Shown here piece by piece: positions 16,391-46,784 of a DNA stretch of 64,000 bases (positions are counted from its first letter, which is position 1; the number at the start of each line of letters is the position of its first letter). The position numbers and the translations under genes are program-made. This stretch comes from Scyliorhinus canicula (taxonomy: Eukaryota), in contig NC_052171.1 in NCBI RefSeq assembly GCF_902713615.1, forward strand, positions 22,852,324 through 22,916,323. The letters run 5' to 3'. The notes under the pieces are model-generated. The model worked only from the letters and a program-made list of their open reading frames with translations. It was not told the DNA's origin and did no database searches.

Positions 16391-16468
16391 AATGCATCTG
16401 GACGCGATGACCTTAATGAAGCTGAACCCCCTAGGAAACTTGTATTGGAAAAGAACACATTTAATCAG
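16391..16468 (+). CDS. BTRC: beta-TrCP-like gene, first identifiable coding exon (NASGRDDLNEAEPPRKLVLEKNTFNQ)
   Basis: ccccAG acceptor and CAG/GTGACG donor; 78 nt, phase 0-0; matches recalled human BTRC NSSEREDCNNGEPPRKIIPEKNSLRQ. The symbol names the nearest human gene; orthology is uncertain. Confidence 0.88.
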
Positions 16469-17082
16469 GTGACGATTCAACTCTGCACTGCGGCTGACAA
16501 GGAGTGATTTATTTTAGAGTTGCCCGCCTCCACCAACCTCATTGAACCGCTCTGAAAACACAACCACATTCGAGAATGCGGAGTTGGGATTGTGGAACGT
16601 CCATCAGTTTTAGCGGCATCCCTCGGGGTGAAATCTGCAAAAACCAGTGCAACCCATGATCAGGGAGCTGGACGTGTTGTTGATGTGAACCTTTCCACTG
16701 CCTCACTCCCATTGCAATAACCAGGATGGTCAGTTACCTCCCCATTGTGGCCATCTTCAAATTGAGCTCCTTTCCTCAGAGCCCCAGCCTCACTTTGCAA
16801 CCTCCTCCAGCCATATTCTGCCCCAACTCTCTGCCGCTCGAACTCTCGCCTCTTGTGTATTCCCCGCACCCCCTTCTTCTCCCGCTCCACCAGTGCCATC
16901 AGCCCTCTGAACCCCATCTGTCCTTCAGTCCTTGAACCCCCTCACCCTACCTGAGTCACTCCCCACCCTTCCAGCTCCCTCCCTCCCTTGGGTTAGTTTC
17001 TACGCTGGAGCCCGTCGGTAAATACAAACAAAAAGTTCTGTGCCGAATCTCGACTCTCTTTAAAATTCTTATTCCTTTGCAG

Positions 17083-17314
17083 ACTAAACTCAGCAATGGC
17101 ACGTCAAGCATGATATCAGCCAAGCAACGTGCAGCTTCTAATAGTTATGAGACACAGAAAGAGCAGTGTGTGAAATACTTTGACCAGTGGACAGAAACCG
17201 ACCAGGTGGAGTTCGTCGAGAACTTGATATCCCGAATGTGTCACTATCAGCACGGTCACATCAACTCTTACCTGAAGCCAATGCTGCAGAGGGACTTTAT
17301 CACAGTCCTCCCAG
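17083..17314 (+). CDS. BTRC: beta-TrCP-like exon: D (dimerisation) domain and start of F-box
   Basis: [11 protein letters not shown]...[37 protein letters not shown]; ttgcAG / GTACGT; 232 nt. Confidence 0.97.
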
Positions 17315-18476
17315 GTACGTGGCCAGAGGAGAGGAGGTACGGGGGGACCAGAAGGGGTTCAGCGCACTCACGTGGAGCTCAGTACGTCACCCAGTCAAGG
17401 GCGTCTGTGCCGGCTCTTTAGCAAATCCTGCCTCCCTGCTCTTTTCCCAAACACCATGCGCAATTCTTGCTCAAATTTCCTTCGACCTGCACGCTCTGAT
17501 TACCCGCACTCCTGCCTTGGGGAAACTGCTTCTCCCTATTTGATTTGGGAAACTCTTTGTAATTTTAGATACTGTGATAAAATCGCTCCTTCTCCTCCTG
17601 TGTTCCTCGAAGCACAATCTTACCCCCTCCAGCCTCCGCCATCGGACTGGACTTTAGTAATTCTCCTTGGCGCTCAGTTCCTCTCTCAAATGTGGGACCC
17701 GGGGTGTATATTTTTTTTCTTTCATGTGATTTGGACGTCGGTGTCTGGAACAGTTTTTATTGCCCATCCTTAACTTCCCTTGAGTGGGTATTTCAGAGTC
17801 AGGCACGTTGCTGTGGGTCTGGAGTGGCCTGTGGGCCAGACCAGGTAAGGACGGCAGATTTCCTTCCCGAAAGGACGTGATGGTTTACGACAGTGGACAA
17901 TGGATTCATGATCAGCGTTTCAGATACTTATTGAATTCAGATTTTGCCACCTGCAGTAGTGGCAATCGAAGCGAGTTCCCATGCATTCCCCTGGATCTCT
18001 GGGTTAGTTCCTGTGACAGTCCCACTGTACCAGTGCTGCAATGAATTGGGCACCCTGCTCCAGCGCAGGTCAACTGCGTTACTCCGTGCCTCCCGTTACA
18101 AAACCAATGCATCTGTTCCCCTTTTCACAATCTTATCAACATGACGAGACAGTGAGGGAATGTGTTTCCTCTCCCACAAACCCTTCTCTCCCCCCCAAGT
18201 TCCCTTGTGATCCTTTCCTGGGATTTGTGGATAAGCCTAATCGCTGCCGCGCGAGAATGTTTGTTTCAAGCGCTCGCTCATTGATAGAGACAGAGCTACG
18301 AATTGCTGAAATGTGTTCTCGAGCAGTGTGTTCATATCCCATGCTGGGAGGGATGTTTTCAAGTGAATGGTCTGCATCATTTCCTGTGCTGAAGTCTTTG
18401 AAAACCGGAAGTGGGGAATGACAAAGAGAGAGAGGCAGACATGGTTAATTGGTTTAAAGGGGAAATGGCAGTGAGT

Positions 18477-19366
18477 ACATAGAACATAGAACAGTACAGC
18501 ACAGAACAGGCCCTTCGGCCCTCAATGTTGTGCCGAGCCATGATCACCCTACTCAAACCCACGTATCCACCCTATACCCATAACCCAACAACCCCCCTCT
18601 TAACCTTACTTTTTTATTAGGACACTACGGGCAATTTAGCATGGCCAATCCACCTAACCCGCACATCTTTGGACTGTGGGAGGAAACCGGAGCACCCGGA
18701 GGAAACCCACGCAGACAGGGGGAGGACGTGCAGACTCCACACAGACAGTGACCCAGCCGGGAATCGAACCCGGGACCCTGGAGCTGTGAAGCATTTATGC
18801 TAATCACCATGCTACCCTGCTGGCAGTAGGGTGGTACTGGTTAGGGCGGCACAGCGGCAGAGTGGATAGCACTGCAGCCTCACAGAGCCAGGGTCCCGGG
18901 TTCGATTCCAGCTTCGGGTCACTGTCTGCGCGGAGTCTGCACGTTCTCCCCGTGTCTGCGTGGGTTTCCTCCGGGTGCTCCGGTTTCCTCCCACAGTTGT
19001 GCAGGTTGGGTGGGTGTTGGTGTGGAAAGGGCAGGGGAGTGCCATTCATCAACAGCTCTTTTATGGAGAGCTGGCACAACCTGGGTAGACCGAATTGCCT
19101 GCCTCTGTAACGTTTCTTTAACTCTAAAGTGAACGTTATAGTTTTTTTTAAATTTAGCGTACCCAATTCTTTTTTTCCAATTAAGGGGCAATTTAGCGTG
19201 GCCAATCCACCTACCCTGCACATCTTTGGGTTGTGGGGGTGAGACCCACGCAGACACGGGGAGAATGTGCAAACTCCACACGGAGACTGACCCAGAGCCG
19301 GGATTGAACCTGGGACCTCGGCGCCATGAGGCAGCAGGGCTAACCACTGCGCCACCCTGCTGCCCT
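18477..19366. mobile_element. SINE cluster: B(-) 18477-18820, B(+) 18844-18997, A(-) 19140-19366
   Basis: tRNA heads and V-domains; head-to-head arrangement. Confidence 0.88.
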
Positions 19367-19705
19367 AGTGAATATTATAGTTGAGGTGGATTAACTTTTG
19401 TTAACACAGGTTATTAGGTGACAGCAGGGAGTGTTGGGAATGTGGTCACAGATCAGCCCTCATCCCATTGAAGGGTGCAGGAAATTGGAGGGGCTGAACG
19501 GCCTCCTCTTCCAAAAGACACAAGGTACCCTCTGGCCAAAGCCCATTCTCATTCCCCGCCTCTGCGTGCCAGCAGGCCCTGCACCAACTCAGCACTGCTG
19601 TGTCGTTGCCACTTTGGCTGCCTTGAGTCCAGGTTTGGGCCAAGCCCTTGCTGGACCCGGGTTTAGCCGACCTGTTTTTCACTGTTTATGTCTTTGCTTG
19701 TGTAG

Positions 19706-19892
19706 CCCGTGGTCTGGATCACATTGCAGAGAACATCCTCTCGTTCCTGGATGCCCGGTCACTGTGTGCTGCTGAGCTTGTGTGTAAGGAATGGTATCGG
19801 GTGATCTCTGATGGAATGCTCTGGAAGAAACTGATGGAACGCATGGTGCGGACGGATTCCCTGTGGAAGGGGCTCTCCGAAAGGAGGGGATG
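19706..19892 (+). CDS. BTRC: beta-TrCP-like exon: F-box
   Basis: [42 protein letters not shown]...GLSERRGW; tgtAG / GTAAGG; 187 nt. Confidence 0.97.
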
Positions 19893-20039
19893 GTAAGGAT
19901 TGTGCTGCATTGATGCCTCCCAAGGGTGTGAATTCCAAGTTCCGGGAGTGATGACATCCCGAGTCCAGGTCCAGGAGTCTGGGTTCAGTCTCCCCACCGA
20001 GGCCCAATTACCTAATCTCAGCAACAACCCAGCCAATGG

Positions 20040-23000
20040 GGACCAAAGGTCACTGGGTAGCCAAGGGTCACTGGGTAGCCAAGGGTCACTGGGTAGCCAA
20101 GGGTCACTGGGTAGCCAAGGGTTACTGGGTAGCCAAGGGTCACTGGGTAGCCGTGGGTCACTGGGTAGCCAAGGGTCACTGGGTAGCCAAGGGTCACTGG
20201 GTAGCCAAGGGTCACTGGGTAGCCATGGGTCACTGGGTAGCCAAAGGTCAATGGGTAGCCAAAGGTCACTGGGTAACCAAGGGTCACTGGGTAGCCAAAG
20301 GTCACTGGGTAGCCAAAGGTCACTGGGTAGCCATGGGTCACTGGGTAGCCAAGGGTCACTCGGTAGCCAAAGGTCACTGGATAGCCAAGGGTCACTGGGT
20401 AGCCAAAGGTCACTGGGTAGCCATGGGTCACTGGGTAGCCAAGGGTCACTGGGTAGCCAAGGGTCACTGGGTAGCCAAGGGTCACTGGGTAGCCAAGGGT
20501 CACTGGGTAGCCAAGGGTCAAAGGGTAGCCAAAGGTCAATGGGTAGCCAAAGGTCACTGGGTAACCAAGGGTCACTGGGTAGCCAAAGGTCACTGGATAG
20601 CCACGGGTCACTGGGTGGCCAAGGGTCACTGGGTAGCCAAGGGTCACTGGGTAGCCAAGGGTCACTGGGTAGCCAAGGGTCACTGGGTAGCCAAGGGTCA
20701 CTGGGTAGCCAAGGGTCACTGGGTAGCCAAGGGTCATTGGGTAGCCAAGGATCACTGGGTAGCCAAGGGTCACTGGGTAGCCAAGGGTCACTGGGTAGCC
20801 AAAGGTCACTGGGTAGCCAAAGGTCACTGGGTAGCCAAAGGTCACTGGGTAGCCAACGGTCACTGGGTAGCCAAAGGTCACCCGGTAGCCAAAGGTCACT
20901 GGATAGCCAAGGGTCACTGGGTAGCCAACGGTCACTGGGTAGCCAAAGGTCACTTGGTAGCCAAGGGTCACTGGGTAGCCAAGGGTCACTGGGTAGCCAG
21001 GGGTCACTGGGTAGCCAAGGGTCACTCGGTAGCCACGGGTCACTGTGTAGCCAAGGGTCACTGGGTAGCCGTGGGTCACTGGGTAGCCACGGGTCACTGT
21101 GTAGCCAAGGGTCACTGGGTAGCCGTGGGTCATTCGGTAGCCACGGGTCACTGTGTAGCCAAGGGTCACTGGGTAGCCGAGGGTCACTGGGTAGCCGTGG
21201 GTCACTGGGTAGCCAAGGGTCACTGGATAGCCGTGGGTCACTGGGTAGCCAAGGGTCACTGGGTAGGGTCACTGGGTAGCCGTGGGTCACTCGGTAGCCA
21301 AGGGTCACTGGGTAGCCAAGGGTCACTGGGTAGGGTCACTGGGTAGCCGTGGGTCACTCGGTAGCCAAGGGTCACTGGGTAGCCAAGGGTCACTAGGTAG
21401 CCAAGGGTCACTGGGTAGCCAAGGGTTACTGGGTAGGGTCACTGGATAGCCGTGGGTCACTGGGTAGCCAAGTGTCACTGGGTAGCCAAGGGTCACTGGG
21501 TAGGGTCACTGGATAGCCGTGGGTCACTGGGTAGCCAAGGGTCACTGGGTAGCCAAGGGTCACTGGGTAGCCAAGGGTCACTGGGTAGCCATGGGTCACT
21601 GGGTAGCCAAAGGTCACTGGGTAGCCAAGGGTCACTGGGTAGCGAAAGGTCACTGGGTAGCCAAGGGTCACTGGGTAGCCAAAGGTCACTGGGTAGCCAA
21701 CGGTCACTGGGTAGCCAAGGGTCACTGGGTAGCCAAAGGTCACTGGATAGCCACGGGTCACTGAGTGGCCAAGGGTCACTGGGTAGCCAAGGGTCACTGG
21801 GTAGGGTCACTGGGTAGCCAAGGGTCACTGGGTAGCCATGGGTCACTGGGTAGCCAAAGGTCACTGGGTAGCCAACGGTCACTGGGTAGCCAAGGGTCAC
21901 TGGGTAGCCGTGGGTCACTGGGTAGCCAAGGGTCACTGGGTAGCCGTGGGTCACTGGGTAGCCGTGGGTCACTGGGTAGCCAAGGGTCACTGGGTAGGGT
22001 CACTGGGTAGGCAAAGGTCATTGGGTAACCAAGGGTCACTGGGTAGCCAAAGGTCACTGGATAGCCACGGGTCACTGGGTGGCCAAGGGTCATTGGGTAG
22101 CCAAGGATCACTGGGTAGCCAAGGGTCACTGGGTAGCCAAGGGTCACTGGGTAGCCAAGGGTCACTGGGTAGCCAAAGGTCACTGGGTAGCCAAAGGTCA
22201 CTGGGTAGCCAAAGGTCACCTGGTAGCCAAGGGTCACCGGGTAGCCAAGGGTCACTGGGTAGCCAAAGGTCACTCGGTAGCCAAAGGTCACTGGGTAGCC
22301 AACGGTCACTCGGTAGCCAAAGGTCACTGGATAGCCAAGGGTCACTGGGTAGCCAAAGGTCACTTGGTAGCCAAGGGTCACTGGGTAGACAAAGGTCACG
22401 ATAGCCAAGGGTCACTGGGTAGACAAAGGTCACGATAGCCAAGGGTCACTGGGTAGACAAAGGTCACGATAGCCAAGGGTCACTGTGTATCCGTGGGTCA
22501 CTGGGTAGCCAAAGGTCACTGGGTAGGGTCACTGGGTAGCTATGGGTCACTGGGTAGCCGTAGGCCACTGGGTAGCCAAGGGCCACTGGGTAGCCACGGG
22601 TCACTGGGTAGGGTCACTGGGTAGCCAAAGGTCACTGGGTAGGGTCACTGGGTAGCCAAAGGTCACTGGGTAGGGTCACTGGGTAGCCAAGGGTCACTGG
22701 GTAGGGTCACTGGGTAGCCAAAGGTCACTGGATAGCCGTGGGTCACTGGGTAGCCAAGGGTCACTGGGTAGCCAAGGGTCACTGGGTAGGGTCACTGGGT
22801 AGCCAAGGGTCACTGGGTAGCCATGGGTCACTGGGTAGCCAAAGGTCACTGGGTAGCCAAGGGTCACTGGGTAGCCAAGGGTCACTGGGTAGCCAAGGGT
22901 CACTGGGTAACCAAGGGTCACTGGGTAGCCAAAGGTCACTGGGTAGCCAAGGGTCACTGGGTAGCCAAGGGTCACTGGGTAACCAAGGGTCACTGGGTAG

Positions 23001-23670
23001 CCAACGGTCACTGGGTAGCCAACGGTCACTGGGTAGCCAAGGGTCACTGGGTAGCCAAAGGTCACTGGGTAGCCAAGGGTCACTGGGTAGCCATGGGTCA
23101 CTGGGTAGCCAAGGGTCACTGGGTAGCCAAGGGTCACTGGGTAGCCAAAGGTCACTGGGTAGCCAAGGGTCACTGGGTAGCCAACGGTCACTGGGTAGCC
23201 AAGGGTCACTGGGTAGCCAAGGGTCACTGGGTAGCCAAGGGTCACTGGGTAGCCAAGGGTCACTGGGTAGCCATGGGTCACTGGGTAGCCAAGGGTCACT
23301 GGGTAGGGTCACTGGGTAGCTAAGGGTCACTGGGTAGGGTCACTGGGTAGCCAAGGGTCACTGGGTAGCCAAGGGTCACTGGGTAGCCAACGGTCACTGG
23401 GTAGCCAACGGTCACTGGGTAGCCAAGGGTCACTGGGTAGCCAAGGGTCACTGGGTAGCCAAAGGTCACTGGGTAGCCATGGGTCACTGGGTAGCCAAGG
23501 GTCACTGGGTAACCAAGGGTCACTGGGTAGCCATGGGTCACTGGGTAGCCAAAGGTCACTGGGTAGCCAAGGGTCACTGGGTAGCCATGGGTCACTGGGT
23601 AGCCAAGGGTCACTGGATAGCCAAGGGTCACTGGGTAGCCAAGGGTCACTGGGTAGCCAACGGTCACTGG
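20040..23670. repeat. 18-bp minisatellite GGGTCACTGGGTAGCCAA, ~200 copies, with 13-bp variant units
   Basis: direct tandem periodicity; intronic. Confidence 0.97.
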
Positions 23671-25044
23671 AGAGCAGTCAGCCAACTGAAAATGCACAGT
23701 CCTTTTCAGTCGATGCACTCTGCTGTGATGGTTCCTACAGTGCAATATCCTGCTGATGCTGCTGTTCATTGTAGACGCACAGTTACTGGGTCCCTCAACA
23801 GGATTGAGCACAGCAAAGTGAGGATATGAAACTTACAGGTGGGGAAGTTAATTAAATCTCTCCCTCCATCTTTTGGACCCACAGGATTTTCTTGTGTGAG
23901 ATTATCAATCATTTGGGTGGAGAGAGGTGAATTTATCTTGAGGTGGTTCAGGAGACCCATGCCTCCTGAGAGAATTTGTTACACAAAATGCCAGCTGAAA
24001 CTTTTTTTGAGATGCCCGCTTAACTGAAGAACCAAACACATGGCGAAGACAGTGTGTCCACAGTTATGCGAACAGGGGTGTGTCGGGAAAAAAAGACATG
24101 CACGTTTCTTTCACACCTCACCTTGCCCATTTCCCAACGTGCTGCCCACAACAAGTCACTCTGCTTTGAAATGATGTGGCACCCATTCTGGGCACAAGCA
24201 ACATCCCACAAGCAGCAACACAACAAACAGCCGATTACTCTTTGGCAATGTTGATTTGAAATGTTGCCACAAGATATCCTGGAGTGGAAAATGGCTGTCA
24301 GAGAGTCAGATCCTTCTGTCTGCATCTCTTGTTCCAAGCCTCAATGAGCCCTGACTACTGGATTGGGGTTTGTAACTTCATAAACTCTACTAATTTACAA
24401 GAAAATAATATCTGCTGACAATATTTTCTGTGAGAAGCAGTTGATGGTGTGCGAGACCTGATTCGCTGCTCAGCTGTACTTGCTGCCTGGAGTGGGAGAG
24501 ACAGAGAGAGTTCAGGAGCCAACATTAGCAGCTCGTTGACTGCTTCATCCCAAGTTCTGGTTGCGTACACTGACCACTGTTGCACAAACATTTGGTGAAG
24601 GAATCGAGATGTAAAGAACAGCAGATTAAAGTTCTGCATATGTTTCTCCATCTTTTGCTCCAACGGACAATGTGCGAAGCCAATCCTCCCAGTTAGCAAG
24701 CAGAGATTTATTTTATGTAACTTTAATTATCTGCTAAGAGTGGATGAAGAAAGTATTATTTATTTATCTGAACCGAAATCTCCCACGGGTTTGAAAGGGA
24801 TCTCTTAACGGAGAGGTGTTCGTCTCCTCCACGTCCAACCCTTCGATCTGTTTTACCTATTTCTCCTGAGCGAGGATGTTCAGATGCACCTGTGTGTCTG
24901 TATATAATCTGTGACCAGATTGATGATTTATCATGCTTCACAGAATGACATGTAGTGACGGTGATCCCAGTTAGTCACAGCTGTGCTCGGACACACAGCT
25001 CTGGGCTAACCACTTCCTCACAGATTGGGGAGTGTCCGCAGTAA

Positions 25045-25527
25045 TAGAATATTACAGCGCAGTACAGGCCCTTCGGCCCTCGATGTTGCGCTGACCTGTG
25101 AAACCACTCTAAAGCCCAGCTACACTATTCCCTTATCGTCCATATGTCTATCCAATGACCATTTGAATGCGTTGAGTGTTGGCGAGTCCACTACTGTTGC
25201 AGGCAGGGCATTCCACGTCCTTACTACTCTCTGAGTAAAGGACCTACCTCTGACATCTGTCCTATATCTATCTCCCCTCAATTTAAAGCTATGTCCCCTC
25301 GTGCTGGACATCACCATCCGAGGAAAAAGGCTCTCACTGTCCACCCTATCTAATCCTCTGATCATTTTGTATGCCTCAATTAAGTCACCTCTTAACCTTC
25401 TTCTCTCTTTCGAAAACAGCCTCAAGGCCCTCAGCCTTTCCTCATAAGATCTTCCCTCCATACCAGGCAACATCCTGGTAAATCTCCTCTGTACCCTTTC
25501 CAATGCTTCCACGTCCTTCCTATAATG
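25045..25527 (-). mobile_element. young CR1 LINE 3' fragment
   Basis: intact reading YRKDVEALERVQRRFTRMLPGMEG...FTQRVVRTWNALP. Confidence 0.92.
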
Positions 25528-25587
25528 TTGCTGATCTCCAGTGCAGAGATTTTGATGCCAACGTCCTGGATTTTGTTTATGTTGTAG

Positions 25588-25684
25588 GATCCAGTATCTG
25601 TTGAAGAACAAGCCTTCCGATGGGATTCTCCCTCCAGATTCCTTCTACAGATCCCTGTATCCCCAAATTATACAGGACATAGAG
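25588..25684 (+). CDS. BTRC: beta-TrCP-like exon: F-box to WD40 linker
   Basis: [32 protein letters not shown]; tgtAG / GTAAGA; 97 nt. Confidence 0.96.
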
Positions 25685-26933: not shown

Positions 26934-27071
26934 ACCATTGAATCGAACTGGAGATGTGGACATCACGGCTTGCAGCGGATACACTGTCACAGCGAGACCA
27001 GTAAAGGTGTCTACTGCTTACAGTACGATGATCAGAAAATTATCAGCGGTTTACGCGACAACACAATCAAG
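26934..27071 (+). CDS. BTRC: beta-TrCP-like exon: WD40 repeat 1
   Basis: [46 protein letters not shown]; tttcAG / GTAAAT; 138 nt. Confidence 0.97.
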
Positions 27072-27367
27072 GTAAATAGAGCAGCGACTGAATGGAGGAA
27101 GGTTTGTTAATGAGCCCAGTCAGTTTGACATGGCTTTATTAATCAAATAGTCTTCAGGTTGTGTTGTAATGGGGATGTGCACAGTGTCAGAGCTGACTGG
27201 GGTCCAGTTTAATATCTGCTCATCTCCACTGGGAGTTCCTGTGGAACAGGAGCTGCTGCGCGTAGTCACACAAAGGAATCTGTTGGTTGGTCAGCATTAA
27301 TTGGCTTGTGTACGGCTCAGGCCTGGTCTCCATTCCACAGCAAGAATATTGAAACCTGGAGCAGCGG

Positions 27368-28460
27368 GGAGGGTGAGGAGGCTGTGATTGGTGGAAGGGA
27401 GAGGGGGAAGGCTGTGATTGGTGGAAGGGAGAGGGGGAAGGCTGTGATTGGTGGAAGGGAGAGGGGGGAGGAGGGTGTGATTGGTGGAAGGGAGGGGGGG
27501 AGGAGGGTGTGATTGGTGGAAGGGAGAGGGGGAAGGCTGTGATTGGTGGAAGGGAGAGGGGGGAGGAGGGTGTGATTGGTGGAAGGGAGAGGGGGAGGAG
27601 GCTCTGATTGGTGGAAGGGAGAGGGGGAAGGCTGTGATTGGTGGAGGGGAGAGGGGGGAGGAGGCTGTGATTGGTGGAAGGGAGGGGGGGAGGAGGCTGT
27701 GATTGGTGGAAGGGAGGGGGCGGAGGCTGTGATTGGTGGAAGGGAGAGGGGAGGAGGCTCTGATTGGTGGAAGGGAGAGGGGGAAGGCTGTGATTGGTGG
27801 AGGGGAGAGGGGACGGAGGGTGTGATTGGTGGAGGGGAGGGGGCGGAGACTGTGATTGGTGGAGGGGAGAGGGGACGGAGGGTGTGATTGGTGGAGGGGA
27901 GGGGGCGGAGAGTGTGATTGGTGGAGGGGAGAGGGGGCGGAGGCTGTGATTGGTGGGAGGGGGGAGAGGAGGGTGTGATTGGTAGAGGGGAGAGGGGGCG
28001 GAGGGTGTGATTGGTGGGAGAGGGGGAGGAGGGTGTGATTGGTGGGAGAGGGGGGAGGAGGGTGTGATTGGTGGAGGGGGGAGGCTGTGATTGGTGGAGG
28101 GGAGAGGGGGGGCGGAGGGTGTGATTGGTGGAGGGGAGAGGGGGGGCGGAGGGTGTGATTGGTGGAGGGGAGAGGGGGGGGCGGAGGGTGTGATTGGTGG
28201 AAGGGAAAGGGGGAGGAGGCTGTGATTGGTGGAGGGGAGAGGGGGAGGAGGCTGTGATTGGTGATGGGGAGAGGGGGCGGAGGCTGTGATTGGGGGAGGG
28301 GAGAGGGGGCGGAGGGTGTGATTGGTGGAAGGGAGAGGGGGAGGAGGCTGTGATTGGTGGAGGGGGGCGGAGGCTGTGATTAGTGGAAGGGAGAGGGGGT
28401 GGAGGGTGTGATTGGTGGAGGGGAGAGGGGGGTGGAGGGTGTGATTGGTGGAGGGGAGAA
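27368..28460. repeat. G-rich ~30-33-bp minisatellite (TGTGATTGGTGGA.GGGAGAGGGGG.GGAGG)
   Basis: about 34 tandem units. Confidence 0.95.
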
Positions 28461-28534
28461 GATGGCAGGAATCGCGCCGGTTTAATGACACGAATGACCA
28501 TGGTGATCTGTGATATTTGTTCTGCCCTCTCCAG

Positions 28535-28653
28535 ATTTGGGACAAGAACACATTGGAGTGTAAGAACGTTCTGACAGGACACACTGGCTCGGTGCTGTGT
28601 CTGCAGTATGATGACAAAGTGATCATTACTGGATCCTCGGACTCCACAGTAAG
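28535..28653 (+). CDS. BTRC: beta-TrCP-like exon: WD40 repeat 2
   Basis: [40 protein letters not shown]; tccAG / GTATGT; 119 nt. Confidence 0.97.
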
Positions 28654-28996
28654 GTATGTGGCTGCTTACTCCCAGGTGTATGCTCGACTTGGCAATAGGA
28701 ACTGATGCTGTGCGTAAACCACACTGGGGTGAAACACTCACTCTCTGGTGAACCTCGTTAACCCCCTCGTTACACACATTTTTCATCGATGAGTGAGTTG
28801 AGCTTTACAGGAGACAGGCAAGAAAGTTGAGTTCTGGTTATAATTACATTCATAATGATACTGAATGGCGGAGCAGACTGGTGGGGCTGAATGGCCGATT
28901 CCGATGCCTGTTAATAACGATCATCATTCCAATGACTGGACAGCACTGGCTCAGTCACCTGTTACCTGGCTCCCAGAGGTGAAAGGATCAGTGTTT

Positions 28997-29499
28997 AACC
29001 CACTGCTCCGCCTCAGCCTGCGTGCCCCCCCGCCCCCCTCCCCATCCTCTCTCTGAACCCACTGCTCCGCCCCCGCCTGTGTGCCCCCCCTGCCCACCCT
29101 CCCCATTCTCTCTCTGAACCCACTGCTCTGCCTCCGCCTGCGTGCCCCCCCCCCCGGCCCCCTCCCCATCCTCTCTCTGAACCCACTGCTCCGCCTCAGC
29201 CTGTGTGCCCCCCCCCCCGCCCCCCTCCCATCCTCTCTCTGAACCCACTGCTCCGCCTCAGCCTGTGTGCCCCCCCCCCCCCCCGGCCCCCTCCCCATCC
29301 TCTCTCTGAACCCACTGCTCCGCCTCCGCCTGTGTGCCCCCCCTGCCCACCCTCCCCATTCTCTCTCTGAACCCACTGCTCCGCCTCCGCCTGTGTGCCC
29401 CCCCGCCCCCCTCCCCATTCTCTCTCTGAACCCACTGCTCCGCCTCCGCCTGCGTGCCCCCCCCGTCCCCCCTCCCCATTCTCTCTCTGAACCCACTGC
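28997..29499. repeat. C-rich ~57-60-bp minisatellite (AACCCACTGCTCCGCCTC...CCTCTCTCTG)
   Basis: 8-9 tandem units. Confidence 0.93.
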
Positions 29500-29550
29500 G
29501 GAGTGCTTCTATTTAACTGGGGTGCTGTATGTTTGATTTGCCCATTACAG

Positions 29551-29800
29551 AGTATGGGACGTTGGTACAGGGGAGATGTTAAACACACTGATCCATCACT
29601 GTGAAGCTGTCCTCCATCTCCGCTTCACCAATGGAATGATGGTCACCTGCTCCAAGGATCGTTCGATAGCTGTGTGGGATATGAGTACATCCACGGACAT
29701 CACCTTGCGCAGGGTCCTTGTTGGACACCGAGCAGCTGTCAACGTTGTGGATTTTGACGATAAGTACATCGTATCAGCTTCTGGGGATAGGACCATCAAA
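29551..29800 (+). CDS. BTRC: beta-TrCP-like exon: WD40 repeats 3-4
   Basis: [25 protein letters not shown]...[19 protein letters not shown]; tacAG / GTAAGA; 250 nt. Confidence 0.97.
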
Positions 29801-31402
29801 GTAAGACCTCTTTCATCACTCCTTCCTTCTCTTTTGTGCAATGTTTGTCTGTTCTTTTTCTCCCTCCCCCTGATGTTGACAGTGGGGCCATTCTGCCCCT
29901 CGAGCCTGGTGTGTCAGTTCCGAGCTGATCTGGACACAAACTCCATTTACCCATCTTTGCTCCGTGCCCTTTGATTGCCTTCGCCAATAAAAACCTTGCA
30001 GACTGGAGTCGACAGGCTGTCTGATCCAGCGGCGTGCGGTGTGACCAACACAGAGTTTAGGTCCTTGTCAGATAAGTGTATTGTATCAACTCTTCCCAGC
30101 AACGGAATGGGATGCTGGGTGAAATTGAATTGGAATTCTCGTGTCTCACTGGCTTGGATCAGCTCATCAGCGGATCAACTCATTGATCCACTTTTCCAAA
30201 CGTTTTCCCATCGGATGGAGTTTGATAAATGTTCCCGAGCCATCTGAGCATCTTGTGGAATGCACATTTGTAAAGTGCTACATCTTGACCTCTGCCATAA
30301 GCCCAGAGGTGTGCTGTTTAGGTGGACTGGCCACGCTAAATTTCCTCTGAGCGGTGAAGTGGGGTTGCGGGGGTAGGCTGGGGACGTGGGTGTGGTGCCA
30401 TCACGGAGGGTTGGTGCAGACTCGATGGGCCGAATAGCCTCCTTCTTCACTGTAGGGATTCTATGATTCCACAAGCTTCTATCTCCTGAGCTCCGGATCA
30501 AAGGTTTAGTCTGTATCGATTTGGAAGTGAGTGGCCAGTTGATGCTCCTGAATACGATAATATTCGATGAACACCCCCATAGTCAGGACACCCCAAATTA
30601 GTTGCAGCCAGCTAATGCTCCATGTCACACAGTCACTGTTGTTTTACTGGATAATGCACCTGGCAAATGGGAGACACAAAATCCCCATAAACAGGACTGA
30701 GATCAAAGCGCACAAAGTCTCTTTCCCCCCCGTGTTGATTCAGAAATAATTATTGGCAGTGGCAGAACGGTCTATTTCCTGCTCGACATTTTAGATTTCA
30801 CTTCAACAGAGTCTGGGTGTACTGTCTCCTCCGAGAACATGCCAACACTGGCAGAGTGAAACTCTCTCTGGTCCGTGTCGGGCACCCTCGGTGCTGCCCC
30901 TCTGACAGCTCAGCCCTCCCTCAGTTGCTGCATCGGCATTGTACGGCTGCATTGTCTGTGGAATGGGACTGGGACTGGGACTCTCAGCCCATTGACCTCG
31001 CAAGTGAAGGGAATAGTCACCCTCTCTCCACACCCCTCTCCAGCTTCTCAAAACGCCTGACCATATAAAAACCCCAACTTGGCCTTCACCAATTTAACGT
31101 TCCATTAATAATAATAAAAAACACAGAGATAAACTCAGCAGGTCTGGCAGCATCTGTGGAGAGAGAATCAGAGTTCATATTTCGGGTTTAAATGACCCTT
31201 CTGCAGAACTCATTCCCTTATTGTTCTATCAGGATTATCCCAAGCTCAGGTCAGTCTTAATATCCCTCCTGAATTCAGGAAGTGATCCCAGTTACTTGCC
31301 CTTGACCCTCTGTTCTTTAAGAGTTCCTGATGATGTGTGAGTGAATATTTGTCTAGGTGTGTTGCTAACCGTGCTTCCTTCCGCCTCTCTCTCTCTCTCG
31401 AG

Positions 31403-31521
31403 GTGTGGAACACTGGCTCCTGTGAGTTTGTGCGCACGTTGAATGGTCACAAGCGAGGCATCGCCTGTCTGCAGTACAGGGACCGACTCGTGGTCAGTGG
31501 TTCCTCCGATAACACAATCCG
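31403..31521 (+). CDS. BTRC: beta-TrCP-like exon: WD40 repeat 5
   Basis: [40 protein letters not shown]; acceptor is an unusual GAG, donor GTATGT; 119 nt. Confidence 0.96.
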
Positions 31522-31721
31522 GTATGTCTCTTCCCATCTCACACCTCTCTCAAACTACACTCCCCGCGGCAAGTCCTTGCTTCGTTCAGTCACAGAGTGA
31601 CCATCAGCGCCATGCATTAACTTGCAGTTCAGCTGTGCCAGTTGCAATATCTTTAAACTCTCTGCTTGTTTTGGGCAGGAACAGAGCTGGGTAAAAGGAA
31701 CCCGGTGAATTTAGGTGATCT

Positions 31722-34700
31722 TTTTCATTTTAAACGCATTTTATTCAAACTTGTATCAAAGTAGGTTACAGCAAATAAACACTCCGGGAAACAATCTTCC
31801 CAACAATCAACTATACAGTTTGTACAGATTTTCCTGGCCCCCCCCCCCCCCCCCCGGGTGACTAATGGCCCCTCGAAGACGGTCCCAAACATCCCCCACC
31901 TTTTCTCGAACTCCCCTGCTGAGCCCCTTAACTCATACTTTATCTTCTCTAACCGCAGGAAGTCGTACAGATACCCAACCGTGCTGCTACCCCCGGTGGC
32001 GATGCCGACCGCCACTCCAGCAACATCCGTCGCCGTGCAATCAGAGACGAGAAGGCCATGACATCGGCCTTCCTCCTCTCCATGAGCTTCGGCTTCTCTG
32101 AAACCCCAAATATCGCCACCAAAGGGTCCGGGTCCAGTCCCTCCTCCACTATCCTGGCTAAGACAGCGAACACTCCCGCCCAGAATCTTCCCAATTTTGC
32201 ACAACCAGAAACATGTGTGCGTGTTTCGCTGGCCCCCGCCCACACCTCTCACACTCATCTGCTACCCCCTGAAAGAACCCACTCATCCGAGTCATATGCA
32301 CCCTGTACACCACCTTAAACTGTATCAGGCTCAACCTTGCACAAGAGGAGGTCCCATTTACCCTTCACAGTGCCTCACTCCATACACCCCAATTGATCTC
32401 CATTCCCAACTCCCCTTCCCATTTCTCCTTGATCTTCACCACCCGCTCACCTCCCTGCTCCCCCAGCCACTTTATATATCCCCAATTCTTCCCTCCCCTT
32501 CCACATCCGGAAGCAGCAGTCGCTCCAGCAGGGTGTATCCCGGCAATCTAGGGAATCCCTTCCAGACCTTTCGTGCAAAGTCCCTAACCTGTAGATACCT
32601 GAACTCACTGCCCCTCGGCAGCTCTACCCTCTCCCTGAGCTCCTCCAGACTAGCGAACCCTTCCTCCAAATACAGATCCCTCACCTTGACCAGCCCCACA
32701 TCCCTCCACCTCCTGTATACACTATCCATCCTCCCCGGCTCAAACCCATGATTCTCGCACAGCGGCGTTAGCACCGACATCCCTTCCACCCTAAAATGCC
32801 TCCTCAGCTGATTCCATATCTTCACCGTTGACTGCACCACTGGGCTCCCTGAATCCCTACTCTGAGCCATTGGCAATGCTGCCGTCACCATAGCCCTCAA
32901 ACTAGACCCCTCACAAGATTCCTTCTCCATCTTAACCCACTCTACCCCTTCTCCTTCCCACCACCGCCGCACTCTGTCCACATTCGCCGCCCAATAATAA
33001 TGGAGCAAGTTTGGCAACACCAACCCCCCCCCCTGCTGCCTCTGTCTCTGTGGCAGGGTCCTCCCCACCCTCGGCACCTTCCCACCCCCCCCCCCCCCAC
33101 CCCCGCTGCCTCTGCCTCAGGGTCCTCCCCACCCTCGGCACCTTCCCCCCCCCCCCCCCTGCTGCCTCTGCCTCAGGGTCCTCCCCACCCTCGGCACCTT
33201 CCCCCCCCCCCCCCCCTTCCTGCTGTCTCTGCCTCAGGGCCCTCCCCACCCTCGGCACCCCCCCCGCCTCTGCCTCAGGGTCCTCCCCACCCTCGGCCCC
33301 CCCCCCCCTGCTGCCTCTGCCTCAGGGCCCTCCCCACCCTCGGCACCCCCCCCGCCTCTGCCTCAGGGCCCTCCCCACCCTCGGCCCCCACCCCCCCCCC
33401 CCCCCCTGCTGCCTCTGCCTCAGGGTCCTCCCCACCCCCGGCCCCCCCCCCCCCCCCCCTGCTGCCTCTGCCTCGGGACCCTCCCCACCCTCGGCCCCCC
33501 ACCCCCCCCCTGCTGCCTCTGCCTCAGGGCCCTCCCCACCCTCGCCCCCCCCCCACCCTCGCCCCCCCCCCCCCCCCCCCCCCGCTGCCTCAGGGTCCTC
33601 CCCACCCTCGGCCCCCCCCCCCCCCCTCCCGCTGCCTCAGGGTCCTCCCCACCCTGCCCCCCCCCCCGGCTGCCTCTGCCTCAGGGCCCTCCCCACCCTC
33701 GGCACCTCCCCCCCTATACAAAGTCAGAGATGATTGTGTCCACTTTCCGAAAAAGGCCTTTGGTATAAAGATGGGGAGAGCCTGAAAGATAAACAAGAAC
33801 CTCGGCAGAATATTCATTTTCACCACTCGGACCCACCCTGCCAACGCTAAGTGCCGTGTATCCCACCTCTTAGATCCTCCCTGGCCTCCTCCACCAGCTT
33901 CGTTAAGTTTCACTTACGGAGCCCCGTCCATTCCCTCGCTACCCTGATTCCCCAAGTACCTAAACCTATCCCTCGCTACCGTAATGGCATCCCCATAAAT
34001 TAGCCGCTGTGCCAGCTCTTCACCGGAATACCTCGCTTTTCCGACATTCATCATAGAACATAGAACGTACAGCACTGAACAGGCCCTTCGGCCCTCGTGT
34101 TGTGCCGAGCCATGATCACCCTACTCAACCCACGTATCCACCCTATAACCCGTAACCCACAACCCCCCCCTTAACCTTACTTTTTAGGACACTACGGCAT
34201 TTAGCATGGCCAATCCACCTAACCCGCACATCTTTGGACTGTGGGAGGAACCGGAGCACCGGAAGAAACCCACGCACACACGGGGAGGACGTGCAGACTC
34301 CACACAGACAGTGACCCAGCCGGGAATCGAACCTGGGACCCTGGAGCTGTGAAGCATTTATGCTAACCACCATGCTACCGTGCTGCCCTTATGTATCCCG
34401 CGAACTCTCCAAACCTCCCCAACAGGCCCATAATCCTTCCCATACTCTCCAACGGATCCGAAACATACAGCAAGAGGTCATCGGCATAGAGCGACACCCG
34501 ATGCTCCCTCTGTCCCCTCATTATCCCCTGCCACTCTGCCAACCCCCTGAGAGCCATCGCCAATGGCTCTATGGCCAGCGCAAAGCAGCAGCGGCGACAG
34601 CGGGCCACTCCTGCCACGCGGTGGTGTTTTTCATGTTGCTTTGTCCCCCAGCATTCGGCGACAATTGGGTGCTTTTTCTTCCTTTCCAGCACTGGTTGCT
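31722..34700 (-). mobile_element. L1/Tx1-like LINE ORF2 remnant containing a minisatellite (33030-33715) and a SINE (34052-34388)
   Basis: SLYADDLLLY, VKMNILPRFLFIFQ and LPNLLHYYWAAN motifs; A-rich tail near 31725. Confidence 0.88.
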
Positions 34701-35430
34701 GAAAGAGCGCTGACCAATGTTGGGGCAGTAAGATCCCACAGACAGCATTGTGTTGGTTCCCAGATAATGATGTTGGTTGAGGTTGACCAGAGTCACCGGG
34801 CAGGCCTCCCTCCTCTACTCTGCTTCCAGCCGGAAGCTCAATGTAACATCGTGCGGAATGCGTGGCCCCTCCATCATTGCAGCATTCCCTCCGGACTGCA
34901 CTGAACCTGTGGCCCGAATAACGGTGCGAGTCTCTGCAACTGAGGATTTAACCTGCTGGGCACTGAGGTGCAAGCGTTGCCTGCTGAACTCTCTTCTTTA
35001 AATGGGCTGAGCATTTGCTTGTTAACCTGGGCACAGAACCGGACGTACATCGCCCACCATTCAACAACAAGGCCTCTCCTGTGTGGAAAATGGCACTGAC
35101 CATGAACCCTCTGTAAATGCTCACAGACATCTCCCACTTTACTCATTGTCCAACTGCTCACCTCAACAATAAAAGTTTGCATTTATATAGCACCTTGATC
35201 ACTGTAAAACACTTCCAGGAGCTGCACAGCAATGTCATCAGGCACAATCTGACCCGACAACCTGAGGGGATATTAGGGCCCATCGGCCGGAAACTTTGAC
35301 TTGGGTTTTAAGGAGAGCATCTTGAAGATTGAAAGAGAGTTTTCCTTTCCGCGCTTTCGGCTCAGTTATTCTTGCTTCAAATTCCCCCTGCTGACTTTTT
35401 GCCCCTCTGATTGATGTGCCCCTGCTGCAG

Positions 35431-35541
35431 GCTGTGGGATATCGAATGTGGAGCATGTCTGCGGGTCCTGGAGGGCCATGAAGAACTCGTTCGATGCATT
35501 CGTTTTGACAACAAGCGAATAGTTAGCGGAGCTTATGATGG
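35431..35541 (+). CDS. BTRC: beta-TrCP-like exon: WD40 repeat 6
   Basis: [37 protein letters not shown] read directly from the DNA (absent from the ORF track); tgcAG / GTAAGC; 111 nt. Confidence 0.97.
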
Positions 35542-35674
35542 GTAAGCAAGAGAGAAAGGTCAATGATATATCGATTTTCTCATCCCACCCATTTTCAAAA
35601 TGAGCTTTGAAGGCAGTAAAATAGTTTTTGAAATATATTCACTGTCATCATATAACGTTTCATCTGGGAGGTGG

Positions 35675-36510
35675 CCCCTCTGACAGTGCGGCAGCTCCCT
35701 CAGTACTGACCCTCTGACAGTGCAGCACTTCCCTCAGTACTGACCCTCTGACAGTGCGGCACTCCCTCAGTACTGACCCTCTGACAGTGCAGCACTCCCT
35801 CAGTACTGACCCTCTGACAGTGCGGCACTCCCTCAGTACTGACCCTCTGACAGTGCGGCACTCCCTCAGTACTGACCCTCTGACAGTGCGGCACTCCCTC
35901 AGTACTGACCCTCTGACAGTGCAGGCACTCCCTCAGTACTGACCCTCTGACAGTGCGTCACTCCCTCAGTACTGACCCTCTGACAGTGCGGCACTCCCTC
36001 AGTACTGACCCTCTGACAGTGCGGCACTCCCTCAGTACTGACCCTCTGACAGTGCAGCACTCCCTCAGTACTGACCCTCTGACAGTGCAGCACTCCCTCA
36101 GTACTGACCCTCTGACAGTGCGGCACTCCCTCAGTACTGACCCTCTGACAGTGCGGCACTCCCTCAGTACTGACCCTCTGACAGTGCAGCCTCCCTCAGT
36201 ACTGACCCTCTGACAGTGCGGCACTCCCTCAGTACTGACCCTCTGACAGTGCAGCACTCCCTCAGTACTGACCCTCTGACAGTGCGGCACTCCCTCAGTA
36301 CTGACCCTCTGACAGTGCGGCACTCCCTCAGTACTGACCCTCTGACAGTGCGGCACTCCCTCAGTACTGACCCTCTGACAGTGCGGCACTCCCTCAGTAC
36401 TGACCCTCTGACAGTGCGGCACTCCCTCAGTACTGACCCTCTGACAGTGCGGCACTCCCTCAGTACTGACCCTCTGACAGTGCGGCGCTCCCTCAGTACT
36501 GACCCTCCGG
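35675..36510. repeat. 33-bp minisatellite CCCTCTGACAGTGCGGCACTCCCTCAGTACTGA, ~25 copies
   Basis: direct tandem periodicity. Confidence 0.97.
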
Positions 36511-36765
36511 CATTCTGAGCCGATTGGGCAGGATTGAAATGTAATGTCGCTGCTCAAGCAGGATCTATATTTGTACAACATCAGCATGTGTTTATATAGC
36601 ACCTTCCATCGATGAGTCTCCTGCAATCTGGCACTTTGGGAAATAGCTGAGTCTCTGACTGTTCACAACGCTGGCAGAGGCCTGAGATAATCCAAAGCTG
36701 ACCTGACCACACACACACCTTCGTGTTTATTTAGTTTGGCTTCTCTTTTCTGTTTTGTTTTATAG

Positions 36766-36844
36766 CAAAATTAAAGTGTGGGACCTGGTGGCTGCATTGG
36801 ACCCCCGATCTCCAGCTGGGACTCTCTGTCTGCGAACATTGGTG
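36766..36844 (+). CDS. BTRC: beta-TrCP-like exon: WD40 repeats 6-7 linker
   Basis: [26 protein letters not shown]; tatAG / GTAAGA; 79 nt. Confidence 0.97.
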
Positions 36845-36900
36845 GTAAGAATCCAGCTTCTGACTGAATTCCAGATATCCCTTCAACTGACCTGCTTCAT

Positions 36901-37485
36901 GGGCGGCACGGTGGCACAGTGGTTAGCAGTGTTGCCTACAGCGCTGAGGACCTGGGTTTGAAAGGGCAGCACGGTAGCATTGTGGATAGCACAATCGCTT
37001 CACAGCTCCAGGGTCCCAGGTTCGATTCCTGGCTGGGTCACTGTCTGTATGGAGTCTGCACATCCTTCCCCATGTGTGCATGGGTTTCCTCCGGGTGCTC
37101 CGGTTTCCTCCCACAGTCCAAAGATGTGCAGGTCAGGTGGATTGGACATGATAAATTGCCCTTAGTGTCCAAAATTGCCCTTAGTGTTGGGTGGGGTTAC
37201 TGGGTTATGGGGATAGGGTGGAGGTGTGGGCTTGGGTGGGGTGCTCTTTCCAAGAGCCGGTGCAGACTAGATGGGCCGGGTGGCCTCCTTCTGCCCTGTA
37301 AATTCTATGAAATTCTATGAATCCCGGCTCTGGGTCACTGTCCGTATGGAGTTTGCATATTCTCTCCGTGTCTGCGTGGGTTTCGCCCCCACAACCCAAA
37401 AGACGTGCAGAATAGGTGGATTGGCCACGCTGAATTGCCCCTTAATTGGAAAAAATAATTGGGTACTCTAAATTTGTTTTTTAAA
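36901..37485 (+). mobile_element. family A SINE with a full family B SINE nested inside (36963-37320)
   Basis: 16-bp TSD AACTGACCTGCTTCAT at 36885-36900 and 37486-37501. Confidence 0.88.
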
Positions 37486-37756
37486 AACTGACCTGCTTCA
37501 TTTATCACGAACATGTGCTGTGTGATCACACTTCTCCTGTAATCAGAAAGCTGTGGTTTCAGTCTGGGAGCACTTAATGATAACACAAACGTTCAGCAAG
37601 TCTTTCAGAAGGTAAATGTTAACCTCACCTTTACTGCAAGGTCCTTGTGGGTCTCAGTAAGAGAGCCTTGCTGCAGGGATTATAGACCTTCTGTGACACC
37701 GCACCTCCACTGCGATCTCTGCTCTTGGTGTCCTGACCCAAGGAAAGATGTAAAGG

Positions 37757-38245
37757 TCATGTTGGGGCTGTACAGGGCTTTGGTGAGGCCACAGCTGGAG
37801 TAGTGTGTTCAGTTCTGGTCACCGCACTATAGGGAGGATGTGATTGCCTGGAGGGGGTACAGAGGAGATTCACCAGGACGTTGCCTGGGATGGAGCGTGT
37901 CAGCTGGGAAGAGAGGCTGGAGCAGAGAAGGCCGAGAGGGGACCTGATTGAGGTGGATAAGATGATGAGGGCGACATGGGAAGGGTGGATAGAAAGCAAC
38001 TCTTCCCCTTCGTTGAATGGTCAATAACAAGGTTTCGAGGGAATTTTCACCCAGAGGGTTGTGGGAATCTGGGATGCACCCACTGCCTGGGAGGCAGGAA
38101 ACCTCACAACCTTTAAAAAAGTACTTGGATGAACAAATGTCACAACATTCAAAGCTATGGGCCACGTGCTGTGAATTGGGTTTCGTGTAGTTTTGTTGGT
38201 GCAGACTCAATGGGCCTGAGGGCCTCTTCTGTATGATTCTGTGAT
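37757..38245 (+). mobile_element. decayed CR1 3' fragment
   Basis: ALVRPQLE.CVQFWSPHY and QRRFTR-like remnants. Confidence 0.85.
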
Positions 38246-38312
38246 CTGTTCAAAAACTACGGAACAGAAAACTGTTATCCTTGCAGATCAAACCTTGCTT
38301 ACTGTCAGTGGC

Positions 38313-38939
38313 CTGAATTCTCTGTGTTCTGAATTCTCTGTGTTCTGAATTCTGTGTTCTGAATTCTCTGTGTTCTGAATTCTCTGTGTTCTGAATTCTC
38401 TGTGTTCTGAATTCTCTGTGTTCTGAATTCTCTGTGTTCTGAATTCTCTGTGTTCTGAATCCTCTGTGATCTGAATCCTCTGTGATCTGAATCCTCCGTG
38501 ATCTGAATTCTCCGTGATCTGAATTCTCAGAGTTGCGAATTCTCAGAGTTGCGAATTCTCAGAGTTGCGAATTCTCAGAGTTGCGAATTCTCAGAGTTGC
38601 GAATTCTCAGAGTTGCGAATTCTCAGAGTTGCGAATTCTCAGAGTTGCGAATTCTCAGAGTTGCGAATTCTCAGAGTTGCGAATTCTCAGAGTTGCGATT
38701 TCTCAGAGTTGCGAATTCTCAGAGTTGCGAATTCTCAGAATTGCGAATTCTCAGAGTTGCGAATTCTCAGAGTTGCGAATTCTCAGAGTTGCGAATTCTC
38801 AGAGTTGCGAATTCTCAGAGTTGCGAATTCTCAGAGTTGCGAATTCTCAGAGTTGCGAATTCTCAGAGTTGCGAATTCTCAGAGTTGCGAATTCTCAGAG
38901 TTGCGAATTCTCAGAGTTGCGAATTCTCAGAGTTGCGAA
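38313..38939. repeat. 16-bp tandem repeat (CTGAATTCTCTGTGTT grading into GCGAATTCTCAGAGTT)
   Basis: about 39 units; most contain GAATTC. Confidence 0.97.
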
Positions 38940-39641
38940 CCCTGTGCACAAGCTGAAAAAGGAACAACATTATCAGGAAATAAATTAACCTTTCAGGATG
39001 CTCCCCGGCCCACTCTGTTCTGAAGGGGACATTGCACAAGCTTCTCCCAGTCAGATGGGTAATCACAGCAGAGATTGCACAGAATGGGCCAATGGAGTGT
39101 GGAAAATGAGTTAATCGCATTGAAGCAGACACCATTCTTAGAGAGCTAAAACAGGGTGGATACTGAGAGGCTGTTTCACCTGGCGGGAGAGTGGAGAACT
39201 CGGCCGTGTAGACACAGGATAAGAAGCGAGTCACTTAAGAGTGAGGTTGAGAAATGTCTTCACTCAAGAGGGATGAGAACCTCTGGGTTTCTCCGAGCGT
39301 TGTGAACGGTCTGTGAATGAGCATGCTCAGCCTGTGCTTGAAGGACTTTTGGATACGAGGGAATTGTGTTTGAAAGTGGAGTTGATGAGGAATATTGGAT
39401 GTGGAAGCAGGTTTGAGAGGCTGGATAACTGACTCTGGCCCTGTGTTCAGCAGAAGGAGGTAGTTAGGAAACTGACTGGAATACAGGCTGTTTTTCGGGG
39501 GGGGAACACTGCACTTTGATTCTCACCGTCCCACGGGTCAGCCTCAGTATCAGGAATGTGAAGCCAGTTCATCAGCTTTCTTCTAATAATGTTTCCATCA
39601 CCTTCCTCCTGTTTTTCTCTCTCTCTCTCTCTACTGTGCAG

Positions 39642-39803
39642 GAGCATTCCGGGAGAGTATTCAGGCTTCAGTTTGACGAGTTCCAGATAGTTAGTAGTTC
39701 TCACGATGACACCATCCTGATCTGGGATTTCCTGAATGTGCCCTCCGATCAAGGGGACGGCTCGCAGTCAGCACCCCGCACGTACACCTACGTCTCCAGA
39801 TAG
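39642..39803 (+). CDS. BTRC: beta-TrCP-like last coding exon: WD40 repeat 7, C-terminal tail and stop
   Basis: [53 protein letters not shown]; TAG at 39801-39803; the exon probably runs to 39833 (TG/GTAAGT). Confidence 0.97.
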
Positions 39804-46660: not shown

Positions 46661-46784
46661 TCTGTCTACAGTTTTTGCTTCATGAACTATCTGAAGGACG
46701 TCTGAATGCACTTCCTTGAAAACTCGATGGACAAAGTAAAAAATTTGTCCAATTGATTGACTTTTTGGACCTGTGTGTGTCAGT

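Follow-up and report, generated by a model that had tools for sequence, protein, structure and literature searches.

A third beta-TrCP gene of cartilaginous fishes, probably a genome-duplication paralogue of BTRC retained beside a nucleoplasmin gene

The F-box protein beta-TrCP is the receptor through which beta-catenin, IkB and numerous further signalling proteins are sent for degradation, and textbooks credit vertebrates with two genes for it, BTRC and FBXW11. A 64,000-nt stretch of the genome of the catshark Scyliorhinus canicula, which we refer to as the window, carries on its + strand, at 16391–39803, a beta-TrCP gene of 11 exons, called c1 here, that by our analysis belongs with neither. 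We consider c1 to be an intact, strongly constrained third vertebrate beta-TrCP, a paralogue older than the BTRC of sharks, and in all probability an ohnologue from the second vertebrate genome duplication (2R), which would have left it beside Npm2 in the Fgf17-Npm2 paralogon. It would then have survived in the cartilaginous fishes, among sharks and rays as well as chimaeras, and disappeared from bony vertebrates, and the shark orthologue of BTRC would be a separate, fast-evolving gene of about 200 kb, called c2 here.

The 11 exons join into an open frame of 1572 nt, encoding 523 amino acids and ending in TAG, with AG/GT at all splice sites. The gene is intact, and the span 16391–39803 given by the first-pass annotation of this DNA proved exact: position 16391 is the opening base of a coding exon, preceded by an AG acceptor, and 39803 is the final base of the stop codon. 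The 523-residue model is, with zero differences, a part of XP_038641194.1 (P0295 in our set; “beta-TrCP-like isoform X1 [Scyliorhinus canicula]”), encoded on a record of 24,906,204 nt (chromosome, 24.9 Mb) of assembly GCA_902713615.2, where the annotated coding span of 23,584 nt equals window positions 16220–39803. The parts of the gene are as follows.

16220–16390, + strand: sequence that continues the frame immediately 5' of the first exon seen, likely to be intronic or to be an alternative first exon; tblastn places residues 1–92 of P0295 at 16220–16495, and that protein starts here (MLQSEF...)
16391–16468, + strand: beta-TrCP coding exon (NASGRDDLNEAEPPRKLVLEKNTFNQ); AG acceptor, GT donor, in frame
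17083–17314, + strand: exon with the D (dimerisation) domain; AG/GT; Pfam Beta-TrCP_D, E = 7.5e-26 on P0295
19706–19892, + strand: exon with the F-box; AG/GT; 44/48 F-box residues equal the BTRC majority
25588–25684, + strand: linker exon; AG/GT
26934–27071, + strand: exon in which the WD40 propeller starts; AG/GT; Pfam WD40, E = 2.7e-52
28535–28653, + strand: WD40 exon; AG/GT
29551–29800, + strand: WD40 exon; AG/GT
31403–31521, + strand: WD40 exon; AG/GT
35431–35541, + strand: WD40 exon; AG/GT
36766–36844, + strand: WD40 exon; AG/GT
39642–39803, + strand: final exon; AG acceptor, TAG stop at 39801–39803

The c1 orthologues of other species begin with M(M)DSDSILHDKIVEYM, which comes from a separate short exon. 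A search of the window sequence upstream of 16391 did not find the canonical first exon (MDSDSILHDKIVEYM); upstream of the gene there is a gap of 100 N (9017–9116), and the first coding exon of c1 may lie in this gap or upstream of the window.

To find relatives, we queried the whole library with the D-domain exon in HMMER and then ran two full-length searches. At 90% identity c1 forms one cluster of 24 proteins from at least 14 genera (Heterodontus, Chiloscyllium, Hemiscyllium, Rhincodon, Stegostoma, Scyliorhinus, Mustelus, Carcharodon, Cetorhinus, Amblyraja, Hypanus, Hemitrygon, Mobula and Narcine), and the Pristis protein falls in a side cluster. The TETDQ and VENL marks of c1 are also present in a fragment from Callorhinchus (P0002), and therefore the gene would be present in chimaeras too. 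A second shark cluster, c2, holds proteins of Carcharodon, Cetorhinus, Mustelus and Heterodontus; its N-terminal exon (CSVPRSLWLGCSSLADSMPSL) is also present in the BTRC of bony vertebrates, and it has many changes of its own. At 90% identity, elasmobranch FBXW11 (Mobula/Pristis, Heptranchias) clusters together with that of tetrapods. Judged from these clusters, elasmobranchs carry three beta-TrCP lineages, namely FBXW11, c2 and c1. The separate BTRC-type and FBXW11 genes for which the first-pass annotation proposed to look exist in elasmobranchs other than the catshark: Heterodontus assembly GCA_036365525.1 has both c1 (33 kb, on a 20-Mb scaffold) and c2 (222 kb, on a 93-Mb scaffold), and FBXW11 is present in the genera just named. 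Across species c1 is compact, spanning 24–33 kb, and c2 spans roughly 200–230 kb. Outside the chondrichthyans, c1 is matched best by ordinary BTRC proteins, with 87–89% identity.

The c1 proteins are already in RefSeq under automatic BTRC-like names (“beta-TrCP”, “beta-TrCP-like” or “F-box/WD repeat-containing protein 1A”). We found no paper describing a third beta-TrCP lineage; text matches to “beta-TrCP3” were superscript citation numbers. Two further c1-like RefSeq models, P0270 of Narcine and P0305 of Stegostoma, have odd N-termini, and each shares a scaffold with the regular c1 gene of its species. Over its alignable part, which covers 78% of P0170 (the Heterodontus c1), P0270 is 99% identical to c1, and it has no recognisable D domain; P0305 has a long terminal branch (0.15) in the tree. 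Recent local duplication, pseudogene formation or a duplicated stretch of assembly could each account for such models.

The trees set c1 apart from both known genes. They were built in IQ-TREE (LG+C20+F+G4) from 38–40 proteins and 531–535 alignment columns, with echinoderm, amphioxus and tunicate outgroups. FBXW11, the elasmobranch members included, forms a clade with support of 100/100, bony-vertebrate BTRC and shark c2 form another with 100/95, and c1, a 100/100 clade of its own on a stem of 0.14–0.15, stands outside both, as would be expected of the third paralogue that the first-pass annotation had proposed. Its placement as sister to BTRC, also proposed there, is favoured by these trees, though not proven by them, at 96/84 and 94/85, with hagfish just outside the pair. 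Restricting the analysis to the 446 columns of the conserved core, from the D domain through the propeller (LG+G4), gives the same topology, with 95/95 for BTRC plus c2 and 88/73 for c1 as their sister.

Sequence identities, taken over the 492 columns common to all sequences, describe a conserved protein: shark and ray c1 are 97–100% identical, and the BTRC proteins of bony vertebrates are 96–99% identical among themselves. Between lineages, c1 and BTRC share 89–90%, BTRC and FBXW11 86–89%, c1 and FBXW11 83–85%, c2 and BTRC 85–87%, and c2 and c1 81–82%; c1 is therefore as distant from BTRC as FBXW11 is. The window protein differs from the bony-vertebrate BTRC majority at 55/497 aligned positions, compared with 98% identity between the BTRC of Amia and that of human, so that the first-pass annotation was right to find unusually many changes for so conserved a family. 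Most of the 55 differences are fixed in all seven c1 elasmobranchs compared. They comprise 22 positions unique to c1 where BTRC and FBXW11 agree, 13 at which all three differ, a single one where c1 equals FBXW11 only, and 19 where c1 retains the state of FBXW11 and/or the outgroups (FLNVP, RVISDG, YDDK and RFTNG among them). At several of the 19, c2 either agrees with BTRC or carries its own substitution, e.g., FLN(D/E)PT, YRV(T/S/C) and YDER. Thus c1 retains ancestral states found in FBXW11, hagfish and amphioxus, and c2 shares the BTRC-derived FLN(D/E)PT and YRV(T/S/C), which is the pattern expected if c2 is the BTRC orthologue and c1 an earlier split.

All 25 of the peptide motifs that the first-pass annotation had listed are present in the 523-residue model, and a few need to be read differently. 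FDQW, given as FBXW11-like, occurs in c1 but also in the BTRC of Amia. Among the motifs given as specific to c1, YDDKV is shared by hagfish and is probably ancestral, CHSE is shared with c2, YLLK is found in the catshark only (other c1 members have YLFK), and Narcine, a ray, does not have DVGT. The shark and the ray that were compared for these motifs both carry all the remaining “unique” ones, and most of the individual substitutions underlying them are shared by all seven elasmobranchs.

A second line of evidence comes from the neighbouring gene. No gene was called within 10 kb on either side of the catshark c1 gene, and a nucleoplasmin gene of the NPM2 type starts 19 kb downstream, on the same strand.

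58798–62622, + strand: 5' part of the nucleoplasmin (NPM2-type) gene, four exons (about 58798–58851, 59812–59916, 62211–62321 and 62530–62622), located by tblastn of Heterodontus P0307 against the window; Pfam Nucleoplasmin, E = 9.4e-33

The exons for the acidic tail and the nuclear localisation signal (NLS) lie past the window end. P0307, a Heterodontus “nucleoplasmin-like” protein of 170 amino acids and the one match, within the length limits of the search, to the nucleoplasmin reading frame of the window, maps to the 20-Mb scaffold that carries c1. Its full-length match to Xenopus nucleoplasmin scores 202 bits and its match to NPM1 97 bits; the EDYSW junction of the acidic tract is present, as is a bipartite NLS (KRPASNKKAGLAKKKK), which also matches the “nucleoplasmin NLS” peptides of the PDB. 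An atlas search placed nucleoplasmin-2 clusters (0.96 and 0.95) ahead of nucleoplasmin-3 (0.94), which is weak alone. The N-terminus reads MTSNKNN--KSDTPVAVLWS in the catshark and MTSNKSNTSKSDRPVAVLWS in Heterodontus.

The linkage matters because the vertebrate paralogons of this region have been worked out: Btrc is linked with Fgf8-Npm3 in the Lbx1/Tlx1 paralogon and Fbxw11 with Fgf18-Npm1 in that of Tlx3, Fgf24-Npm4 is the mark of the Lbx2/Tlx2 paralogon, and Fgf17-Npm2 marks the fourth, for which no Btrc-type gene was reported (Wotton et al., 2008; PMC2446394). The same study found Npm2/Npm3 and Fgf8/Fgf17 to be sister pairs, and no additional BTRC/FBXW11 homologue in the human genome (PMC2446394). 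A beta-TrCP gene that adjoins NPM2 and is sister to BTRC would fit this scheme exactly. The first-pass annotation had expected an “FGF17/LBX2/TLX2” paralogon; its FGF17 part agrees with the NPM2 neighbour, the partner of FGF17, and its LBX2/TLX2 part does not, since these belong to the Fgf24-Npm4 paralogon (PMC2446394). Nor is c1 the sole BTRC-type gene of these fishes, standing beside LBX1/POLL/DPCD/FBXW4/FGF8: c2 exists, and the neighbour of c1 is an NPM2-type gene.

Among other histories of c1, a duplication of BTRC inside the cartilaginous-fish lineage, giving c1 and c2 outside 2R and followed by a move of c1 to its place beside NPM2, agrees with the finding of both genes only in chondrichthyans in our survey and with the position of both on the BTRC side of the tree. 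We consider it unlikely. The approximately unbiased (AU) test on the full alignment rejects a c1 plus c2 clade (log-likelihood difference, delta lnL, 18.3; p = 0.009); long-branch attraction would join the stems of c1 and c2, yet they are apart in every tree; c2 has BTRC-derived states that are absent from c1; and it is improbable that c1 should have landed by chance beside exactly the NPM paralogue that the 2R model predicts. The chromosomal positions point both ways, Carcharodon having c1 and c2 on a single 122-Mb scaffold, whereas those of Heterodontus are on different scaffolds and the contigs listed for Mustelus c1 and c2 differ in size. (We had tried the spacing of accession numbers as position evidence, the Carcharodon c1 and c2 XP numbers being 23 apart, and dropped it: the XP numbers of Heterodontus c1 and the nucleoplasmin-like protein, on one scaffold, are 67 apart, and the catshark counterparts lie 19 kb apart.) If instead c1 were the true chondrichthyan orthologue of BTRC, relocated, and c2 an odd copy, older or derived, this would agree with the greater closeness of c1 than of c2 to bony BTRC (89–90% against 85–87%) and with the name “F-box/WD repeat-containing protein 1A” that RefSeq gives to many c1 proteins. 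Overall similarity, however, reflects rate of change and not descent, and c2 is fast; the clade of BTRC and c2 is recovered on the full alignment and on the core alike; the AU test on the full alignment rejects c1 plus bony BTRC without c2 with the same values (delta lnL 18.3, p = 0.009); and c1, which has the ancestral states in place of the BTRC-derived ones, adjoins NPM2 and not NPM3/FGF8/POLL. This relocation is in our view quite improbable. That the locus might be a decaying or non-functional copy, or an artefact of annotation or assembly, is suggested by the canonical first exon missing from the window and the gap of 100 N upstream; against the open frame over 11 canonically spliced exons, the 97–100% identity of c1 across 14 genera of sharks and rays, and the nearly unchanged F-box and WD40 domains, this seems to us very hard to sustain.

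The 2R origin that we favour has its own difficulties. On the core alone the AU test gives p = 0.095 for both rival clades (c1 with c2, and c1 with bony BTRC) and rejects neither, and the N-terminal linker and C-terminal tail therefore contribute part of the signal. Two deeper placements are likewise not rejected, c1 outside BTRC plus FBXW11 (p = 0.19) and c1 as sister to FBXW11 (p = 0.18). The p values lose some of their force because the groups to be tested were named once a quick initial tree had been seen. Both c1 and c2 stand on long stems (0.14–0.20), and the single scaffold of Carcharodon c1 and c2 belongs among these points as well. The identification of the neighbour as NPM2 rests on the full-length match and the NLS. 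Linkage of c1 to FGF17 was not seen, the window ending inside NPM2 and the flanks of up to 10 kb in other assemblies being without a further gene, and linkage of c2 to POLL/DPCD/FGF8 was not seen in flanks of up to 10 kb. In human the NPM-FGF pairs are convergent with BTRC and FBXW11, compared with nucleoplasmin and c1 on the same strand here, and a local rearrangement is therefore needed. Finally, no c1 was found in bony vertebrates among the 120 best matches of one search.

As to what the c1 product does, its architecture is the complete beta-TrCP order of D domain, F-box and seven-bladed WD40 propeller. In P0295 the D domain matches the full profile of Pfam PF12125 (1–39/39), and PF12937 (F-box-like) is recorded for the F-box. 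Compared with the bony-vertebrate BTRC majority, c1 differs at 6/50 positions of the D domain, at 4/48 of the F-box, all of them conservative (Y>F, K>R, T>I, I>M), and at 15/296 of the propeller (281/296 equal). By these matches c1 belongs to the beta-TrCP (FBXW1) subfamily of F-box/WD40 proteins. The motifs expected to hold the residues that contact the DSGxxS phosphodegron, on the top face of the propeller, are unchanged in the alignment. The product is most likely a dimeric substrate receptor of the SKP1-CUL1-F-box (SCF) ubiquitin ligase for DSGxxS-type phosphodegrons, like BTRC and FBXW11: from this conservation, it would dimerise via the D domain, bind SKP1 via the F-box and present DSGxxS phosphodegron substrates to SCF.

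With BTRC (beta-TrCP1, FBXW1A) c1 shares the order of its domains, including seven WD40 repeats, and BTRC is its favoured sister group. It differs in forming a separate clade, the sharks' own BTRC orthologue being, as we read the trees, c2; in its 22 unique positions and its lack of BTRC-derived states such as FLNDPT; and in its neighbour, NPM2 and not POLL/DPCD/FBXW4/FGF8/NPM3. FBXW11 (beta-TrCP2) has the same architecture and shares with c1 the ancestral states FLNVP, WKGLS, FYRSL and RVIS, but it is only 83–85% identical to c1 and has elasmobranch members of its own (Mobula/Pristis, Heptranchias). The closest parallel in gene history is that of Fgf24/Npm4, “ohnologues gone missing”, which are likewise 2R copies that survive in certain vertebrate lineages and have disappeared from others, in the same set of Lbx/Tlx paralogons with linked Fgf-Npm pairs (PMC2446394). 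Those genes were kept in teleosts and lost in tetrapods, and are published (PMC2446394), whereas c1 was found only in cartilaginous fishes and would be the Fgf17-Npm2 member.

Several other features of these loci were recorded. At the Heterodontus c1 locus (P0170) a gene for a PBDC1-domain protein lies head-to-head with c1, about 0.9 kb upstream; PBDC1 motifs were not found on the minus strand of the catshark window upstream of 16391. In three sharks a Myb_DNA-bind_5 gene is always upstream of c2. The introns of the catshark gene contain abundant fragments of short interspersed elements (SINEs) and long minisatellites, the latter at 20043–23670, 27369–28459, 28997–29499, 35676–36507 and 38305–38939, with units of 18 bp x 206, 32 bp x 35, 61 bp x 8, 33 bp x 25 (97% match) and 16 bp x 26–39; these large intronic minisatellites cause a strong local guanine–cytosine (GC) skew. 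Copies of tRNA-derived SINEs are dispersed over the whole window. Upstream of the gene, at 2403–4505 on the + strand, is a purine-rich simple repeat of about 2 kb with a similar peptide in all + frames, and between the beta-TrCP and NPM2 genes, at 46757–49282 and mainly on the minus strand, lie remnants of long interspersed elements with endonuclease and reverse-transcriptase reading frames (359 and 215 amino acids).

The c1 gene is an addition to a known family and not a new mechanism. In the 2R reading set out above it would supply the Btrc-type gene missing from the Fgf17-Npm2 paralogon and support the 1R/2R model of this region. On the same reading, the label “F-box/WD repeat-containing protein 1A” that RefSeq gives to shark and ray proteins would point, in many species, to the wrong orthology group. 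Cartilaginous fishes would also offer three receptors for natural comparison, with the true BTRC orthologue, c2, the one that is evolving fast. In four c2 proteins (P0188, P0302, P0303 and P0304) 9–13/48 residues of the F-box are changed, several non-conservatively, the changed stretch reading LGAQWLWAAEQVSKGWL in Carcharodon, together with 22–26/296 residues of the propeller, and the c2 stem has a length of 0.2. A tentative idea, suggested by these substitutions and one that we think more doubtful than probable, is that the BTRC-side ohnologues have swapped roles in sharks, with c1 acting as the working beta-TrCP1-type receptor and c2 losing SKP1 binding or gaining a new function. If this were true, cartilaginous fishes would be a natural experiment on receptor replacement in the degradation machinery of Wnt, NF-kB and Hedgehog signalling.

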